NCBI GenBank assembly: GCA_038496445.1
Contig: JALMLS010000369.1
Span: 62,001 to 126,000 of the forward strand
DNA from: Trichosphaerium sp. ATCC 40318
Lineage: Eukaryota; Protista; Tubulinea
DNA length: 64,000 bases
Direction of reading: 5' to 3'
Part shown: piece after piece, positions 3,571-39,486 of the stretch
Layout of the letters: each line of letters starts with the position of its first letter
Numbering within the stretch: position 1 is the first letter of the stretch
Translations under genes and position numbers: made by a program
Notes under the pieces: generated by a model
Database searches by the model: none
Told to the model about the DNA's origin: nothing
The model's input: the letters and a program-made list of their open reading frames with translations, nothing else

Positions 3571-6228
3571 ATGGCAAAGGCAGACGCTATCAAGGTCATT
3601 GGTGTTCTATTTGCCGCAGAGTTGATATTTATACTATTTTACGGGTTGTTTGTTGACTATGATTCCAAAATCATCGACAAAGACGTTGTTGGAGGCGATA
3701 ACTCCACAGCTACTATTGATGAAGCTCAAGAAGACGTTGGAGTGGGAGTAACCTATTCTTTCTTCCAAGATGTTAATGTCATGGTTTTTATTGGTTTTGG
3801 GTTCCTTATGACGTTCTTACGTAAATATGGGTTCAGCGCTGTACGTTTACTGCATTTTGTAACCTCACGTGACATTTTTCGTGTAGTGGTGGTTTTCTCT
3901 TATGAAATTTTTTTTTTGTGTTGTTTTTCGGCCTACTTTTGTTTTTCTGTTTTTTTGGCTGTTTGTTTTTTGACTCTTGTTTAGGTTGGTACGATTTACT
4001 TGTGGTTTTTGAGTTGTTCAAAGTGATGTAGGTTATAATTTCTTGCTTTCTGCTTTTGTTATTCAATGGGCAATACTTGTACTTGGATTTTGGCATCAAG
4101 TAGATAATGGTGAGGCCTGGCATAACATCAAATTAACTATTGAAAGGTAGCGTGTTTTTTAAGAGAAAAAATCTTGCGCTACGTGCCATCACGTTCTCCC
4201 AAATACCGCTGTTCTATTGATTGTTATGCTAATTTGTTTGTAGCCTTATAACAGCGGACTTTGCAGGTGCATTTTGAGCCTTTTCATTGTTTATTAACTT
4301 AAAAACAGCTGCCGCTGTTCTAATATCATATGGCGCCGTATTGGGCAAATTTAGTCCGTTAACGCTTCTCTACATGGCATTTTTCGAAATAATTTTTTTT
4401 GGTATGAACGAATGGATAGCTGTAACCCAATTTAAAGTCGTAAGTCTTTTTTAGAAATATCTTGTACATGTAAAAGTTTTGTAGAGTGACTTTTTTTCGA
4501 AAATTAATTGTTTTTTTTGTAGGTTGATGTTGGTACGTTAAAATAGCGTCTTGTCGCATTCTGAACGTATTTATTAATGATATAGGTGGTTCTATGGTTG
4601 TACATGCATTTGGCGCTTTCTTTGGTTTGGGAGTGTCTGCTACTGCTGGAAAGAAATCTACTACGAGTCATAAGTTAAATTCTTCAGTTTACCACTCTGA
4701 TCTATTCGCTATGATCGGTACGATTGGCAAAATTCTCCGCTTTTTGTTTTCGTAATTACCGCTTTGTTTTTTACCTTTTTAAAATCACGTGATTTATGTA
4801 TAAGCACCCCACAACCCGAAGAAATAAAAAGTGAGTATTGATTTTCGGTTTTTTTTAGGTACCATTTTTCTTTGGATGTTTTGGCCTTCCTTCAACGGTG
4901 CACTTGCTTCAGGCGCAGGACAGCACAGGTATCACGCGATATTATGTTCTCAGAAAATTCACACAGACTTCTAGAGTTGTAATAAACACCACTTTGGCGC
5001 TTACGGGTAGTGTTATGACTGTACGTTAACTTATAGCTTGCAAGAAGTTTTGTAGTTTTATTAAAAATCTAATATTAAAACCAGGCTTTCATGACGAGTA
5101 TATTACTACGTGGCGGTCGTTTTGATATGGTAGACATACAGAACGCGACTTTGGTATGTATTTCCCCTCAACTCCAAAAAACGCGACATTTTGTTTTCGT
5201 ATCAAGTCAACTTTTTTTGTAAGTCTCCTCTCATGGTTTTTGTAGGCTGGTGGCGTTGCGGTACATTTATGAGTTTTAATAGCAACGTTGTAACGTTTTT
5301 ATAGATTGGTACGAGCGCAGATTTGCTTGTTCAGCCTTTCGCTGCTATAATCATTGGTGCATTTGCTGGTATTGTAAGTGTAGCTGGTTATGTCTATTTG
5401 ACACCTTTCCTTGAAAGTACGGTCCCTCAAAAACCCCAACCCCATTAACCCTTTTTTCAGAACTTGGATTACAGGACACAGCTGGGGTTCTAAATCTGCA
5501 TGGCGTTCCAGGTATTATTGGAGGTCTCAGCGGGGCTATTGCATCCTCAGTAGCTTCTGAAGATGACTATGGACCAAAACAGTACGGGCGTTTCTCTGTC
5601 ATCCAAATTTACTTAACTCTTCCCAGGCTTGTATCTATTTGGGCCGCTAGAGCGCCTGAGAATGAAACACTGGCGTTAGCATTAGGTGTAGATCCCGGAG
5701 ACGGTAGAAGTGCGTCTATTCAAGCGGGATTCCAAGTTGCCGCGTTGCTTGTAACTATTGGTATCGCGTTTGTTTCGGGTACTGCTAAATCAGTTGGTAC
5801 TATCACGTCTAACTCATCCATAGGAGGCCTAACAGGCTCCTTGGTATTCTTTGGTGGTAGAGGTGTCTGGGGTAACCCTGAAGGCAAAGTTGCGTTTCAA
5901 GAAGACGAGTTTTGGGAAGTACCAGACGACTATAACAATTATAGCGTTCTTACAGACAATCAACATATTCGTCGTATGGATACATCTGCGACACTTGTGC
6001 GTTTGACCATAGGAAACTTTTTGTTCTTACATGATGATTTAGGAGATGCAGACAGTTTCTGTTTTGAACACAACGAGAAACAACGTCAATCAAAATCAAA
6101 AGGTACAAAAACGAAAAGAATTTTTTTTTGTTTTGATTTTTTGGTTTCTTTGTTCAAATTTTTGTTTTAAGGAGAGTAAGAGTTCTAAGAGCCACACATC
6201 CGACAGTGATAGCGATAGTAGCGTCTAA
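3571..6228 (+). CDS. Rh-type ammonium transporter (Rh glycoprotein)
   Basis: [52 protein letters not shown]|[18 protein letters not shown]|[18 protein letters not shown] and [10 protein letters not shown] are all Rh-family motifs. Confidence 0.93.
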
Positions 6229-28097: not shown

Positions 28098-29054
28098 TCA
28101 GAAGTATATATGTTGTGCATTACCCAATGACTTAATACCACTGGCTGTTATGGCCTCACAATACCACAGGTGAATTGTGTGCACACCAGCCAATGCCTTC
28201 AAACCGTCATCTGACACATTTGTACTTGATAAATCAATCTCATGAACACCAGCCAAAGCTTTAATACCCTCATCTGTTATTTGCTCACAACCCATCAAGC
28301 CTATTTTGTATACACCAGCTAACACCTTGATACCTTCATCTGTTACATTGGGGCAAAACCGCACTTCAATGGTGTGCACACCAGATAACGCCTGTAAACC
28401 TGCATCTGACACAAGTGTACCTGATAAAGTAATCTCGTGCACACCAGCCAATGCCTTTATACCTTCATCAGTAATTAATTCACAATTCTGTATGCTGATA
28501 GCGTGCACACCAGCCAATGCCTTTAAGGCTTCATCTGTAACATCTGTTTCAGATAAGTCAATTTTATGCACTTTACCTAATGACTTGATGCCATTGTCTG
28601 TTACAAACTTACAGCAATTTAAACTGATAGAATGTACTCCTGAAATTGCCTTCAAACCTTTATCTGTCACATTTGTACAAGATAAATCAATCTCATGAAC
28701 ACCAGCCAATGCCTTAATACCCTCGTCAGTTATCAACTTACATTCCCACAAGGAAATAGTATGTACACCTGCAAGTAAGAGCAAGTGACTGTCATTTACC
28801 CAAGATTCAGCTAAAAATATTGCTGTGTTCCACAGCAATGGACTTCCAGAAAGAAGTTCTACTTCTTTTTCGCTTTTGACTCTTATTTCGCCATATCCAA
28901 TATGGGTGTGAATTATATCTCGCAATAAGATGCACGTTTGGGCTGCACGAAGGGTAAACGAGCCTTGTTTGAAAATATGAACTATTAATTCAACTGGGAG
29001 TGAGACCAGGTAGTATGGGCGTCTAGCACAAGTATCTGTGCTTTCTCCTTCCAT
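28098..29054 (-). CDS. Intronless F-box/LRR protein
   Basis: N-terminal LVSLPVELIVHIF F-box-like motif plus about 10 short LRRs of type GVHxIxLxxxxxTDEGIKALA. Confidence 0.85.
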   Translation of the reverse strand: MEGESTDTCARRPYYLVSLPVELIVHIFKQGSFTLRAAQTCILLRDIIHTHIGYGEIRVKSEKEVELLSGSPLLWNTAIFLAESWVNDSHLLLLAGVHTISLWECKLITDEGIKALAGVHEIDLSCTNVTDKGLKAISGVHSISLNCCKFVTDNGIKSLGKVHKIDLSETDVTDEALKALAGVHAISIQNCELITDEGIKALAGVHEITLSGTLVSDAGLQALSGVHTIEVRFCPNVTDEGIKVLAGVYKIGLMGCEQITDEGIKALAGVHEIDLSSTNVSDDGLKALAGVHTIHLWYCEAITASGIKSLGNAQHIYF

Positions 29055-34158: not shown

Positions 34159-34688
34159 ATGTCTGGTAACAAAAACAAATGGAAGCTTTTATGTTCTGCT
34201 CAAGGATTGGGCGCTGTAGTTACAGCATCTTCAAGTTTCGATACCAATCACATGCCAACCAACTCGGCTATTGACAGGGTTCCACCTCAAGTCTTCGCTC
34301 ATGGTTGGGTTGCCGGTCGTAGTGACTCTTCCCAATGGCTACAATTTTCCTTTGGCTTCAAGCCAGTCAAAGCAGTGTCAATCAGAACACAAGGTTCGTA
34401 GGGCACTACCTCAGCCAAAACAGGGTGAATAGGCAGACTGTTTTCTAATTTTGGCTAGGAAGAGGTGAAGCAGCTATGTGGGTGAAGGAATACACCGTAA
34501 GCACAAGCATGGATGGCCTTACTTGGACACCAGTCGAAAATAATCGTACTTTCGGTGGGAACAGCGACATGAAAGGACAAGTTGAAAACACTTTTGCTAA
34601 GCCTGTACTCTGCAGAGCCTTGCGTATTAAACCAACCTCTTGGCAAGTTCTCATTGCCATGAGGGCTGATGTAATGGTTAAAATTTAA
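34159..34688 (+). CDS. Discoidin (F5/8 type C) domain protein, one intron
   Basis: TASSS, GWVAGRSDSSQWLQFSFG, IRTQG|RGEAAMWVKEYTVSTSMDGLTW, FGGNSD, RALRIKPTSW..IAMRADV. Confidence 0.9.
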
Positions 34689-34938
34689 ACAATTGTAACT
34701 GCTGATATCATGCCAAAACTAATTCTAAAATAAAAAGTGATCACTTACATTTCTGTTTCAAATCCTACTTTTTCCCCCTTGAGAAATAAAGAGCAATTCA
34801 TTTCTGGGCGGTATTGCACGTCTTTTTTTGAACGAATTGACTTAAAACGGATTTTCTCTTATCGACTCGTGAAAACCAGCTGGCATACACTACACTACCT
34901 CGCCAGTTTTTCAACAGACCTCGGGTTTCCTATCAACA

Positions 34939-37900
34939 ATGGATGTTAACGACGAAAGGGTTTGTTTGAAAACTTTTAATATTGCGTCTGTTGAGCATTG
35001 GATACGCAAACGTGAGTCGTTACTTGATTTAGGCGCGTTAACTCTGTTATAGACGGAATCAACACATGCGTCACACAAACACACCTACAAACATACACAT
35101 GCTTGTACAGTGCGTACCACAAGCTATTCGAGCTATTTGACGACACAGACATTCCTTTTGCCAAAAAAATCCCAACAATACTCTATCTGGCATGCGTGGA
35201 GGTACCTAAGTGGCTATTTATTACGCACATAGTTTAACTGAAGGTTTCTCCAAAAAAAACGTTTAGAGCGCCTGTTGTAGTTGTCTAAACCGCTAATCAG
35301 GGAAATATTGAAGTAGTAGATTATCTTATTGGATGTGGCGCTGATATCAATTGGAATGGAATCCAGCACCCCAGACAAAGATCTAAAGTTGTTTTTCCTT
35401 TTGAAGGTGCTCACATGGCCAACATACATTTGACACCTTTCTGGCATTTCATCATCTTTTTTTGTGATGTTACAAAGAAACTTGTGCAGCTGTTCTTGGC
35501 TTCACTACGTCTTACTTTTGACATTTTTGACATGCAAAGGAATGGCCACATCTAAAACTTACTCTATTCCAAGGGTCACAGGCGTCTGTAGACATACCCT
35601 TTTGTTTTTCAATACTAATTTTGTTTTGAATAGTTGCTACAGCAGCACAGAATTGGGATATTGTCAAACTATTACGACAAGCAGGTATTTAATTAAGAAT
35701 AAATACAGCGCATTAAAACATGCTTACGGTATTCAAAGGGGCAACAACTGAAACGAGGGACTTAGGATTCAGTCCTCCTCCACTTGGAAAGCAAGTCAAC
35801 TTTTTTTTCAACAAAACAACATTGTTTACAACACTTTAGGTCGATTTTTGCCCCTTTAATAGAAGATGCCGCCAACATTCTTTTAGAACCAGCTCTACTA
35901 GATCATGTATAATGATTTTTAAGCCACCAATTTGATTTACTAATCCAATGCCTGTAGGATTTAGTAGTTGAAGATATGATTGTTACTTCAGGGAATAAAT
36001 ATAATAAAATACAGACTCCAAAGTCAATCTGTGAACCATCAGCAACCCCGAAAATGAGTCGAACAAATATTGATGTTCCTGGCGCAAAATGTTTCTCTAT
36101 TGATGGATTAATGTCATCTAAAGAGTGTGATTATTATTTAAGCGAATGCGAGAAGATTGGATGGAAGTCTCTGAAAAATCAATTTCCTAAGGAATACAGA
36201 TCAAATGACCAAATTATTCTTTTATCCGAAACCTTAGCTGATGGACTTTGGAATCGTTTGTCGGTACGATTCTATTCTTGATGCGGCCCTAATTAACGCC
36301 ACAGACGCACCTAGAGCGTTCTGATGTTCAAATAAGGCCTATGGGCTTTGGAAATGGCGGATTGTGGCGTCCTATAAGACTAAATGAATGCTTTAAGGTA
36401 CATTACTCATCTTAATAACTGTTTCGTAACACGTGATTAGTTCGGAAAGTATAATGAAGGAGGATCGTTTAATAAACATATTGACGGACCTTGGGTGCCA
36501 AGACATGATGAATGCTCTGTGTTCACTGTTGTCGTTTACTTAAACGATGATTTTAAAGGCATCAACAAAAAATACAAAGAACTTGACTTTCTAAATACAA
36601 TGTAGGTGGTGAAACAGTATTCTTCAATGATGATAAGGAAGTCGCTGTAGTAAATCCAAAGATTGGGTCTGCTTTGTTATTTAATCACGATGTCCTACAT
36701 CAAGGAAACCCTGTTTTAGAGGTGCCAACTTTTATGGTTTTTTTCGGAATTCTCTGACGGTTTGTAGGGAGTCAAGTACATCTTCCGAACAGAAATAATG
36801 TTCATGCGTGTAGATGAGGGTCTTAACCCTCACGAGAAGACTTTCAATTCTAATTCTGACTATCTCAAAACTGTGTTTTATTACAACAAAGTACGACACA
36901 AGAGCAAAAAAAACCTTCATATTCATACTCAACAATAGGCTTATGATCAAGAAGCTGAAGGAAACACAAAAGGCTTCATTGACACATACAGAAAGGCGAT
37001 TAAACTTCAAAGCAGTGCAATTGATACTACAGGTACCTTCCACAGTCAACTGAATATTCTCATATTGCGTTTAGACTTTGATGACTTAGAAGCTGCCTAT
37101 TGAACTGTATTGCATGATTTTTTCTTATCTTCATCCGAAAGATATCACAAATCTCTTTGCAGTGTCAAGGGTATCCACTAATTATTAACCACTGCAATTG
37201 AGAACACATATTGATACAATGATAGGTGTACTATATCTTAGCAAGAGATGGAGCTATTTGGTGTGATAAGTTCAAAGAAAAGTGGAACGAAACAATCAAA
37301 GCATCAAATACAGTAAATCAACAGGGTAACTTAACAGTACGTACTTGTCCTTGTTTTCCCTATCAGTAGATATTTATTTAATATTATACAGATAAAACCT
37401 GCAGTGAAGGATTGGTACACTGTTTACAAACAAAGTGTCATCATTCAACGTCTTGAAGAAAAGAGAAAACTTCAATATGGTAATTAAAGAAACAAACAAG
37501 TATCCTCCTTTCTAACAAATCTATGCTTAAGCCGTGTTTGATTTCGGAAGCTATAGCGTGAAATGCGGACTGGATAAAGATTTTCCTGGCATAGATAAAT
37601 ACCAAGAGACAAAATCAGTGATTGCTAAAGTGCCAAGGTACTATAAATGCTGTCTGAACAGAAACCATAAGAAACTTAAGTTGCTTGCTTCGTTCTAATC
37701 TTCTGGGATTTTTTATAGAATTTATGACCTTCATTCGCGAAGAATGAAGTGGAAAAGGTACTTTATTGGCGAGGAGGCAGAGTTGCAATATCGTAAAGAT
37801 GAAATACACAGGTAAAAAATATATTTTCATATTTTTCTGAAATTCAAAAAAAAACAATACTGCACCTGCGCGACAATTCACATCACTTCAAAGTTTTTAT

Positions 37901-39260
37901 ATTAAACAGATATTGTAGGATAACTAGAGGAGGAAACATAATTGATGGGTACGTATAAATACCGATGCAGAAGGATATGAAGATGAAGAAGAAAATAATA
38001 GTTTTTACATTTTTTTTATTCAGCTGTTAACTGTACTTCTAGTTGTGCTCTTCCTGAATTTATTTGTGGTGCTTTTGTCAAATGGGAACAAAATGGTAAT
38101 TATCACCCAGTCGTAATTGCAGAGCCTCCAACAGGTACTAACATTAAGACAAAAAAAACTTTAGAATGAACATCATTACTAATCATTACTTTAGGATGGT
38201 CAAAGCAACATAAAATTGCTATTAGAAACGTAGTTCTTTTAGCGTGTCATTCGCCTAGTATCACAATTGTTAATTCAGCAACACTTATCCTATTAAATTA
38301 TGGCATTACAACAGGTACAAAAAAACTTCTTTTTTTTTCTTTGACTTCAACTTCAACAGCTCTTTAGGTGTTGTTATTTCGAGTGGTCATGAAGTTTCTT
38401 GTATTGCGCCAGGTAATGCTCTCTTGCTTATTTTATGAACTAACGTTTATTTTAGTGCACGAAGGTGTAGTGATATCTGAGGCAGTGATCGAAATTACCA
38501 ACAAGGATAATATTTCAAAAGACTTGATTTATTCTGTCAAACAATGTCCTCATGCGATACAACAAGAGTTATGGAATAATATTGTATTTTCTGGTATTAG
38601 AAATAGAGCTTATGTTGATTTCTATGCTTCTTAATATCTCTTTTAGGTCATGGAACTACTGAAATTCTTTCTGATGCTCCTGGAAAGGAAGTATTGGAAG
38701 CTGAACTTGCTAGAGTACAATCCTTTTTTCTTAGTTTTTACCCACTCTTAATTCTCACTTATTTCCTAAGGCTGGAATTAACTGCAAGCTTAAAGAACGT
38801 TGCAAAAATCACAGGTTTGATGTTGTAGCGTACGTTTCATAGATAACTTTTTTCATCTACAAGACAGTCGCACAAATATTGGTTTTTTCTAAATACCAAG
38901 AAATACCAACTAACAAAAAAAAATTAGAGGTGGATTAATCTTATCTAAAATGCCTGGTTTTCATGAATTCAGCATTGCCGAAGCTGGCATGCCTTTACTC
39001 TGTACGTATTTTTACAAATAATTCGCTTATTGTTTTATGTTTGCTCTTCCAGTTATAGAAGAGCAATGCCTGTTTGACTTAAGACTATTCACCTCAATTG
39101 ATTTTTTTGTCTTTTTTTAGCATCTACTATTCAAGAAATTAGAATTCGCCATAGAGCCATATTATTTTATTACCATTGCGCATCAGCAACATATTGGTAC
39201 AATAAGCTTGCACGTGGATCTTTAGAGGGAATATAAATTATGAAAGAGCAAGCAAACTAA
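34939..39260 (+). CDS. Multidomain locus: ankyrin repeats + 2OG-Fe(II) oxygenase + F-box + actin-like domain (1-nt frame break near 37089)
   Basis: Ankyrin: TILYLACVE|GNIEVVDYLIGCGADIN. Oxygenase: RLNECFK|FGKY..HIDG..TVVVYLNDDFK|GGETVF..LLFNHDVLHQG..KYIFRTEIMF. F-box: KLPIELYCMIFSYLHPKDITNLFAVS. Actin-like: VFDFGSYSVKCG, YFIGEEA, HPVVIAEPP, YGITT|GVVISSGHEVSCIAP|VHEG, QCPHAIQQELWNNIVFSG. Confidence 0.72.
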
Positions 39261-39486
39261 ACAATAGATACAGTTCGATTGTAGCACCCTTCTTTAATTG
39301 TCCTTAATCGAAGTTTGGTTTGCTTAAGGATGAACCCAATTCATGAGTTTGAAATGATATGGTTGCGCCTTACACGTGATCTAAAACCTCTTGAACTCGG
39401 TCAATAAAAAAAATGATATCTTATCATTTTTGCGCAGAAACGTTTTGACCAATATTTGTTCGCCTCGCCCAAACACTTTTCAACGG

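Follow-up and report, generated by a model that had tools for sequence, protein, structure and literature searches.

Within a 64,000-nucleotide stretch of Trichosphaerium sp. ATCC 40318 DNA (the window, on contig C119 of the assembly), a region at 34.9-39.3 kb had been predicted to encode, in order, ankyrin repeats, a 2-oxoglutarate (2OG)/Fe(II) oxygenase, an F-box and a truncated actin-like domain, with the reading frame broken near 37089. Do these domains belong to a single protein, and if so, what might that protein do? We found one expressed plus-strand gene encoding ankyrin repeats, a 2OG/Fe(II) oxygenase, an F-box and an actin fold without one lobe. All four predicted domains were present, in the predicted order and on the plus strand, in one transcript unit. 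The encoded ankyrin/oxygenase/F-box/mini-actin protein of 863 amino acids (aa) probably serves as a substrate receptor of a Skp1-Cul1-F-box (SCF) ubiquitin ligase with a built-in hydroxylase; its structure was read from the data described below, and its function we infer. The domains themselves are ordinary and the sequences were already public.

One expressed gene across a frame break

34939-39396, plus strand: whole gene; ATG at 34939, 26 exons, stop at 39234-39236, 3' untranslated region to at least 39396
37092-37103, plus strand: frame-break site, from RNA contig versus assembly and translation with and without 8 bases

Contigs from two public RNA runs (X1 and X2) were aligned on the locus, and each joint was placed on its GT/GC..AG pair. 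Because the contigs show GT..AG joints on the locus, they represent RNA. X2 record 6 connects part of exon 3 with exons 4, 5, 6 and 7; X1 record 2 falls within exon 7; X1 record 3 connects exons 8-11, ending at the exon 11 donor (36891); and X1 record 4 (1525 nt) starts at 36864, inside exon 11, and is spliced across all later exons to 39396, with joints that include 36890 to 36939 and 37032 to 37075. Spliced RNA contigs were thus placed on exons 3-7, 7, 8-11 and 11-26. Introns in the gene measure 41-227 nt. Two are of the GC-AG type (35791-35839, GCAAGT..AG; 36559-36605, GCATCA..AG), and spliced RNA contigs support both. The 227-nt intron (35407-35633) interrupts the ankyrin repeat region, and its joint, 35406 to 35634, was inferred from the bin-by-bin depth of X2 record 6 and from the paralog described below. 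Open reading frames (ORFs) in 34.9-39.3 kb are short and switch frame, as expected because the exons are small. The window DNA is intron-rich and eukaryotic, with about 38% G+C; the published draft genome of Trichosphaerium sp. is 70.87 Mb with 37.69% GC in 710 scaffolds, 8.7 introns per gene and a mean intron of 75 nt (PMC10521059). Our genome searches covered a 70.3-Mb assembly of 642 contigs.

As assembled, the DNA brings the oxygenase frame to a TGA at 37101-37103, ending the ORF at residue 458, and the F-box sits in the next frame relative to the oxygenase. X1 record 4 has 8 additional bases (AGCTCCCA) after 37092 that restore a single frame: their inclusion gives ...DFDDLEELPLPIELYCMIF... 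and an ORF of 863 aa, their omission one of 458 aa. The paralog reads DSLPLPIELYCMIF at this position, with DSLPLPIELY against EELPLPIELY in the RNA form; because the two read alike, the RNA form is the conserved one. A genome search found no match to the RNA form of the 8-base site anywhere in the assembly. Along the aligned stretch the RNA contig also departed from the assembly at 12 other positions, and it therefore derives from another allele or strain; of the 11 differences within coding sequence, 8 were synonymous. The 8-base deletion of the assembled allele would cut the protein after the oxygenase, and the expressed allele is without this deletion.

A second copy of the gene bears on the same question. 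Searching the genome with exon 7 returned one other place, on the minus strand of contig C126 (C126:69338-69631, 63% identity). A splice-aware model of this paralog (G000:C126), guided by the window protein, gave 838 aa, with 24 of 25 intron positions in common, the same domain order, the same short actin and an unbroken frame; it is 55% identical to the window copy. The last intron of the window gene (39002-39120) is absent from the paralog, at 4474-4645 on the minus strand of the C126 locus, and was therefore gained or lost between the copies. A protein search with exon 7 found P0001 (837 aa), the translation product of a 2710-nt JGI transcript contig. It matches the paralog model at 834 of 837 residues, so that in the paralog one mRNA carries all four domains. 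Synonymous divergence (pS) between the copies was about 0.79 and saturated; nonsynonymous divergence (pN) was lowest in the oxygenase (0.17), intermediate in the F-box (0.23) and highest in the actin-like part (0.33). Saturated pS with low pN indicates that both copies were long kept as coding sequence. The paralog protein begins MGSATSK, which resembles an N-myristoylation signal; the window copy has no such start.

These data allow two other explanations of the locus to be weighed. Two adjacent genes, one for an ankyrin-oxygenase protein ending at the TGA and a separate one for an F-box/actin-like protein, would account for the frame break at about 37092 with its stop at aa 458, and for the lack of a single RNA record, in either run, that spans the whole gene. 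However, no split between transcripts was seen at about 37.1 kb: record 4 runs from oxygenase exon 11 through the F-box and actin exons in one frame. The F-box's own frame has no ATG upstream of the F-box, the paralog has an unbroken frame on one 2.7-kb transcript, and at least 28 homologues are single chains. We give the two-gene explanation almost no credence. Somewhat unlikely, yet to be taken seriously, is that the deletion is real DNA and that this copy was recently disabled in the sequenced strain, where it would make the ankyrin-oxygenase half only, full function being carried by the paralog or the other allele. The deletion lies outside any homopolymer or simple repeat, the 12 other differences point to an RNA from another allele or strain, and the assembly holds no second copy with the 8 bases. 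On the other hand, 13 of 13 downstream exons are still open with mainly synonymous differences, and the same picture would result if a heterozygous indel had been collapsed or mis-polished during long-read assembly. The break near 37089 is thus real in the assembly, and the predicted fusion was upheld by the RNA, by the intact paralog with its transcript and by the homologues.

Several features of the data weigh against a single fused chain of the kind described. Besides the frameshift in the assembled allele and the want of an RNA record across the whole gene, exons 1 and 2 (34939-35011 and 35053-35201) were placed by alignment to the paralog and have no RNA cover. Continuity from the oxygenase to the F-box in this copy comes from one RNA contig that starts 27 bases inside exon 11 and from a second, overlapping contig that ends at the same splice donor. 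Full-domain Pfam scores and the folds reported below were computed on the paralog protein P0001, not on the spliced window protein.

An oxygenase, an F-box and an actin fold without subdomain 4

35163-35764, plus strand: two degenerate ankyrin repeats (aa ~62-135), exons 2-5; Pfam match weak on the window, past cut-off on the paralog
35958-36821, plus strand: prolyl 4-hydroxylase (P4H)-type 2OG/Fe(II) oxygenase (aa 167-395), exons 7-11; PF13640
36477-36479 (H312), 36483-36485 (D314), 36698-36700 (H370) and 36774-36776 (K380), plus strand: oxygenase residues, coordinates on the window
36822-37076, plus strand: helical linker (aa 396-450), 3' part of exon 11, exon 12 and start of exon 13
37075-37264, plus strand: F-box (aa ~451-497), exon 13 and start of exon 14; Pfam
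37476-39236, plus strand: actin-fold domain (aa 550-863), exons 15-26; subdomains 1, 2 and 3 present
38497-38523, plus strand: junction at the missing subdomain 4 (about actin residues 185-285), within exon 22 (38456-38593)

The profile check by domain that was proposed with the original prediction gave matches past the cut-offs for Actin, PF13640 and F-box-like on the paralog, and for the F-box on the window as well. For the oxygenase, separate window exon pieces matched PF13640 (2OG-FeII_Oxy_3) with E values of 0.008 and 4e-4 (17.5 and 21.7 bits), and P0001 scored 46.2 bits (cut-off 27, E 9e-12). The HxD...H triad, claimed to be intact from the motifs KHIDG and VLHQG, corresponds to H312, D314 and H370, and K380 in GVKYIF is the 2OG-binding residue. 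None of these four residues varies among 28 family members (they are H299, D301, H357 and K367 in the paralog), and the enzyme is predicted to be catalytically competent. The oxygenase was the best conserved part of the family alignment, and it reached a predicted local distance difference test score (pLDDT) of about 90-97 in the AlphaFold model of P0001, which was built on 28 homologues. Similarity to the nearest solved sequences was marginal (PiuC, E 0.003; bacterial P4H, E 0.04), and matches of P0001 to NCBIfam models of Fe2+-dependent dioxygenases were sub-threshold. Bacterial fusions of adenylate-kinase-type domains to a PF13640 oxygenase were also seen in myxobacteria and metagenomes (P0166-P0169), at 31-34% identity to the family oxygenase over about 22% of the query.

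The linker that follows forms three helices in the paralog model, and its consensus is conserved across the family. Beyond it, window exon 37090-37185 matched Pfam F-box-like at 28.0 bits (cut-off 24.3, E 1.8e-6) and Pfam F-box at 25.8 bits (cut-off 20.5, E 9e-6); P0001 matched F-box-like at 28.9 bits (E 1e-6), and its F-box was modelled with pLDDT of about 87-93. When paralog residues 432-535 were docked with Dictyostelium Skp1, the predicted complex had the usual F-box/Skp1 arrangement and scored 0.80 against 0.14 for the best of 3 controls. That mark was attained in 51 of 78 solved complexes and in 2 of 108 mismatched pairs, and the pass is best read as a likeness to known F-box/Skp1 complexes. 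Docking runs agreed in at least 84% of contacts, with partner pLDDT of at least 83. The modelled interface lies on the C-terminal helices of Skp1, with Skp1 residues 137-141 and 145-146 predicted to be in contact.

The claim of an actin-like domain was borne out by sequence and by fold. Over the interval 37530-39000, where an actin match was in question, the spliced window domain matched the genome's own actin in BLASTP at E 7e-10 (paralog domain, 7e-12); we take this conventional actin to resemble the amoebozoan (Dictyostelium/Acanthamoeba) type. HPVVIAEPP...SSGHEV...PVHEG in the window aligns on actin 101-180, and hmmsearch with the family profile returned the window domain at 2e-44. P0001 scored 75.7 bits against Pfam Actin (PF00022; cut-off 27, E 3.5e-21). 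Against actins in the PDB its actin-like domain gave E 1e-13, ahead of the actin-related proteins (Arps): conventional actin was the best sequence match. Foldseek placed the P0001 model on actin at E about 1e-16. The actin-like part was mostly at pLDDT 80-95 in the full model, and when folded alone it gave pLDDT 80.9 and a predicted template modelling score (pTM) of 0.82. AlphaFold modelling of the mini-actin had been proposed as a check; in VIA-align the paralog domain aligned to actin, Arp4 and BAF53 at Z 26-27.6, with a root-mean-square deviation of 2.3-3.9 A over about 250-260 residues. Of the 272 residues modelled with confidence, about 255 found a counterpart between actin residues 5 and 365, as expected if about 100 actin residues are absent. 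A genome-wide scan with Pfam Actin, in which only the best candidates were scored, listed no match at the locus; given that scoring and the short exons, this is not counter-evidence.

The predicted deletion of subdomain 4 also held. Between the PIYEG and MKCD landmarks there are about 24 residues, compared with 114 in actin. Because the junction lies inside exon 22, which is continuous and covered by RNA, no exon was overlooked. The loss is common to the paralog and to sponge homologues. The domain does not show the four subdomains that enclose the nucleotide cleft in actin, subdomain 4 being missing. Actin residues D11, G13, S14, K18 and G156 are kept, and five others are substituted (G15 to Y, Q137 to S, D154 to S, D157 to H, H161 to C). 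In the clade with short actins, the first phosphate loop (D-x-G-S...K) and a basic motif (YD-H-RR...RY) at the D-loop region are conserved. Elsewhere in the genome, C16:279344-279415 on the minus strand gave a weak match to the deletion-junction exon (E 0.005, 50% identity over 24 aa) and may be another actin-family gene.

At the N-terminus, the window exon-3 piece matched Pfam Ank_3 at E 0.009 (16.8 bits, below the 22.3 cut-off), and P0001 passed the respective cut-offs for Ank_3 (24.9 bits) and Ank (22.9 bits). The N-terminal 182 residues of the P0001 model were at pLDDT below 50.

A family found from amoebae to sponges

A search for orthologs with the same domain order, also suggested earlier, found at least 28 proteins with the oxygenase-F-box-actin order; all named ones are annotated as hypothetical or by a single domain. 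In most of 37 proteins of at least 550 aa, the oxygenase is followed by an F-box and then by an actin-like region. Named members come from Amoebozoa (Tieghemostelium, Acytostelium, Cavenderia, Physarum, Dracoamoeba), Heterolobosea (Naegleria fowleri, N. lovaniensis, Willaertia), chytrids (Rhizophlyctis, Nowakowskiella) and the sponge Ephydatia muelleri (P0160, P0161 and P0164, three genes on one 8.2-Mb contig). A profile search with an alignment of the F-box-actin part returned only two family members. In the full-text literature we found no description of an oxygenase/F-box/actin architecture.

A maximum-likelihood tree split the family in two. One clade (13 rows, support 99/96) contains both the window gene and its paralog, and the actin is short in most of its rows; in the other group, of named protists and chytrids, the actin domain is mostly full-length. 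The Ephydatia proteins stood outside the tree and were aligned to the window protein instead: two of the three have the lobe-less actin domain, and over about 550-620 residues these two are 37-38% identical to that protein. Ephydatia P0161 continues for about 150 further residues at its C-terminus. A third family member in the Trichosphaerium genome (contig C4, ~679000-682100) is of the long type and nearer to the Dracoamoeba and Physarum proteins; its oxygenase exons are 42-50% identical to P0040, and a C-terminal actin-like match is present.

No members other than the two Trichosphaerium-like copies showed the N-terminal ankyrin repeats, and one relative, P0030, has C-terminal ankyrin repeats in place of the actin. 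The fusion is a member of an ancient and widespread eukaryotic family, not a local oddity; ankyrin repeats and a missing subdomain 4 mark particular lineages or clades and not the whole family.

The distribution also bears on a published view. The F-box-actin combination was stated to occur only in plants (PMC7562919), which the amoeba, heterolobosean, chytrid and sponge members contradict.

A candidate ubiquitin-ligase receptor with its own hydroxylase

We propose that the F-box would seat the protein on Skp1-Cul1 and that the mini-actin would be the target-binding module, as proposed for plant ARP8/SUSA2. The mini-actin would presumably be unable to polymerise, because subdomain 4 is absent and actin Gln137, Asp154 and His161 are replaced. 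The adjacent oxygenase could then hydroxylate the captured target or a partner, and by analogy with the F-box dioxygenase JcdI, ubiquitylation may thereby depend on O2, 2OG and iron. The two ideas put forward in the original prediction, hydroxylation of a target followed by its ubiquitylation or an O2-responsive SCF with an actin-like bait, are a reasonable hypothesis.

F-box proteins bearing their own oxygenase are rare, and the studied ones, KDM2A/B and JcdI, use JmjC domains. KDM2A/KDM2B (FBXL11/10) are animal F-box proteins with an Fe(II)/2OG dioxygenase in the same chain. In Dictyostelium, the F-box dioxygenase JcdI depends on O2 in the physiological range, its Km for O2 being close to ambient levels, and it has conserved counterparts across protists (PMC9485057). 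JcdI/Fbxo13 and KDM2A/B are like the window protein in joining an Fe(II)/2OG dioxygenase and an F-box in one chain; they differ in that their dioxygenases are JmjC-type and that of JcdI is C-terminal to the F-box, whereas in the window protein a P4H-type (PF13640) oxygenase precedes the F-box and is combined with an actin fold.

The actin fold as a partner of an F-box has been studied only in plants, and here both features share one chain. SUSA2/ARP8 (At5g56180) is an F-box-actin protein that binds ASK1, a Skp1 homologue; its actin domain has been put forward as the part that recognises the substrate, and it can do without its nucleotide-binding residues (PMC7562919). Both ARP8/SUSA2 and the window protein have an F-box followed by a divergent actin fold, but SUSA2 is without an oxygenase and keeps a full actin domain. 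Compared with actin and Arps (PF00022), the mini-actin has the same fold for subdomains 1, 2 and 3; unlike actin, it lacks about 100 residues, reads S/S/C for Q137/D154/H161 and has the basic motif for the D-loop region. As a natural, conserved "three-lobed" actin it would be useful for telling the binding parts of the fold from the polymerisation parts.

A further likeness is to PhyA/Skp1 and PHD-VHL, in which a P4H-type hydroxylase is tied functionally to a cullin-RING ligase and ubiquitylation depends on O2. There the hydroxylase is a separate protein, PhyA acting on free Skp1, whereas here it is fused to the putative receptor. The comparison is one of mechanism by analogy, with no family membership implied. 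The family is a candidate, distinct from PHD-VHL and PhyA-Skp1, for ubiquitylation that is coupled to hydroxylation.

Other roles would use the same domains. The mini-actin might be a localisation or docking module, directed at filament ends, at actin/Arp-binding helices as in chromatin remodellers or at actin-binding proteins, and not a substrate receptor. The residues at the actin cleft between subdomains 1 and 3 (I345/L346/L349/F352/M355) are by eye conservatively kept as I/L/M/F/F, the top structural matches are actin, Arp4 and BAF53 in a tie, and the basic motif in place of the D-loop region is clade-specific, all of which would suit docking. However, a domain C-terminal to an F-box is normally the substrate receptor, as was proposed for SUSA2 (PMC7562919). 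Docking and receptor roles are also compatible, and either way predicted, and we regard docking in place of target binding as unlikely. Very unlikely, in our view, is that the oxygenase acts on the SCF core (for example on Skp1, like PhyA) or that, as an O2 sensor regulating itself, it modifies other domains of its own chain. The oxygenase lies about 60 residues from an F-box that is predicted to hold the C-terminal region of Skp1, Skp1 prolyl hydroxylation exists in amoebae (PMC9485057), and the oxygenase is the part of the family that has changed least. Against this, the similarity to solved prolyl hydroxylases is marginal, and in the docking model the F-box interface buries Skp1 around Pro143. 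The family also occurs in chytrids and in sponges, and we know of no report of Skp1 hydroxylation in the latter.

A substrate receptor that carries its own hydroxylase therefore remains our preferred reading, with some points on the other side: enzyme activity, substrate, Skp1 binding and ubiquitylation are all predicted; the Skp1 docking pass may stem from the model's memory of solved F-box/Skp1 complexes; and, with the first phosphate loop conserved in the short clade, the mini-actin might still bind some ligand. More speculatively, and distinctly improbable as a whole, the family could be an ancient O2- or metabolite-gated ubiquitin-ligase receptor whose actin mimic captures cytoskeletal regulators, which would be hydroxylated and marked for degradation, with ARP8/SUSA2 a remnant without the enzyme. 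If true, O2 and 2OG levels would be linked directly to motility in amoeboid cells.

Two other genes in the window were noted. Upstream of the fusion gene, 34159-34715 on the plus strand is highly expressed (RNA contig depth 48 in X1 and 101 in X2), with a 65-nt intron at about 34392-34456 seen in both runs and a translation that by eye resembles a putative F5/8 type C (discoidin) domain. Its transcript stops near 34715, and the fusion locus is therefore bounded on that side. On the minus strand, 28098-29054 is an intronless ORF of 318 aa that opens like an F-box (LPVELIVHIF) and continues into leucine-rich repeats.

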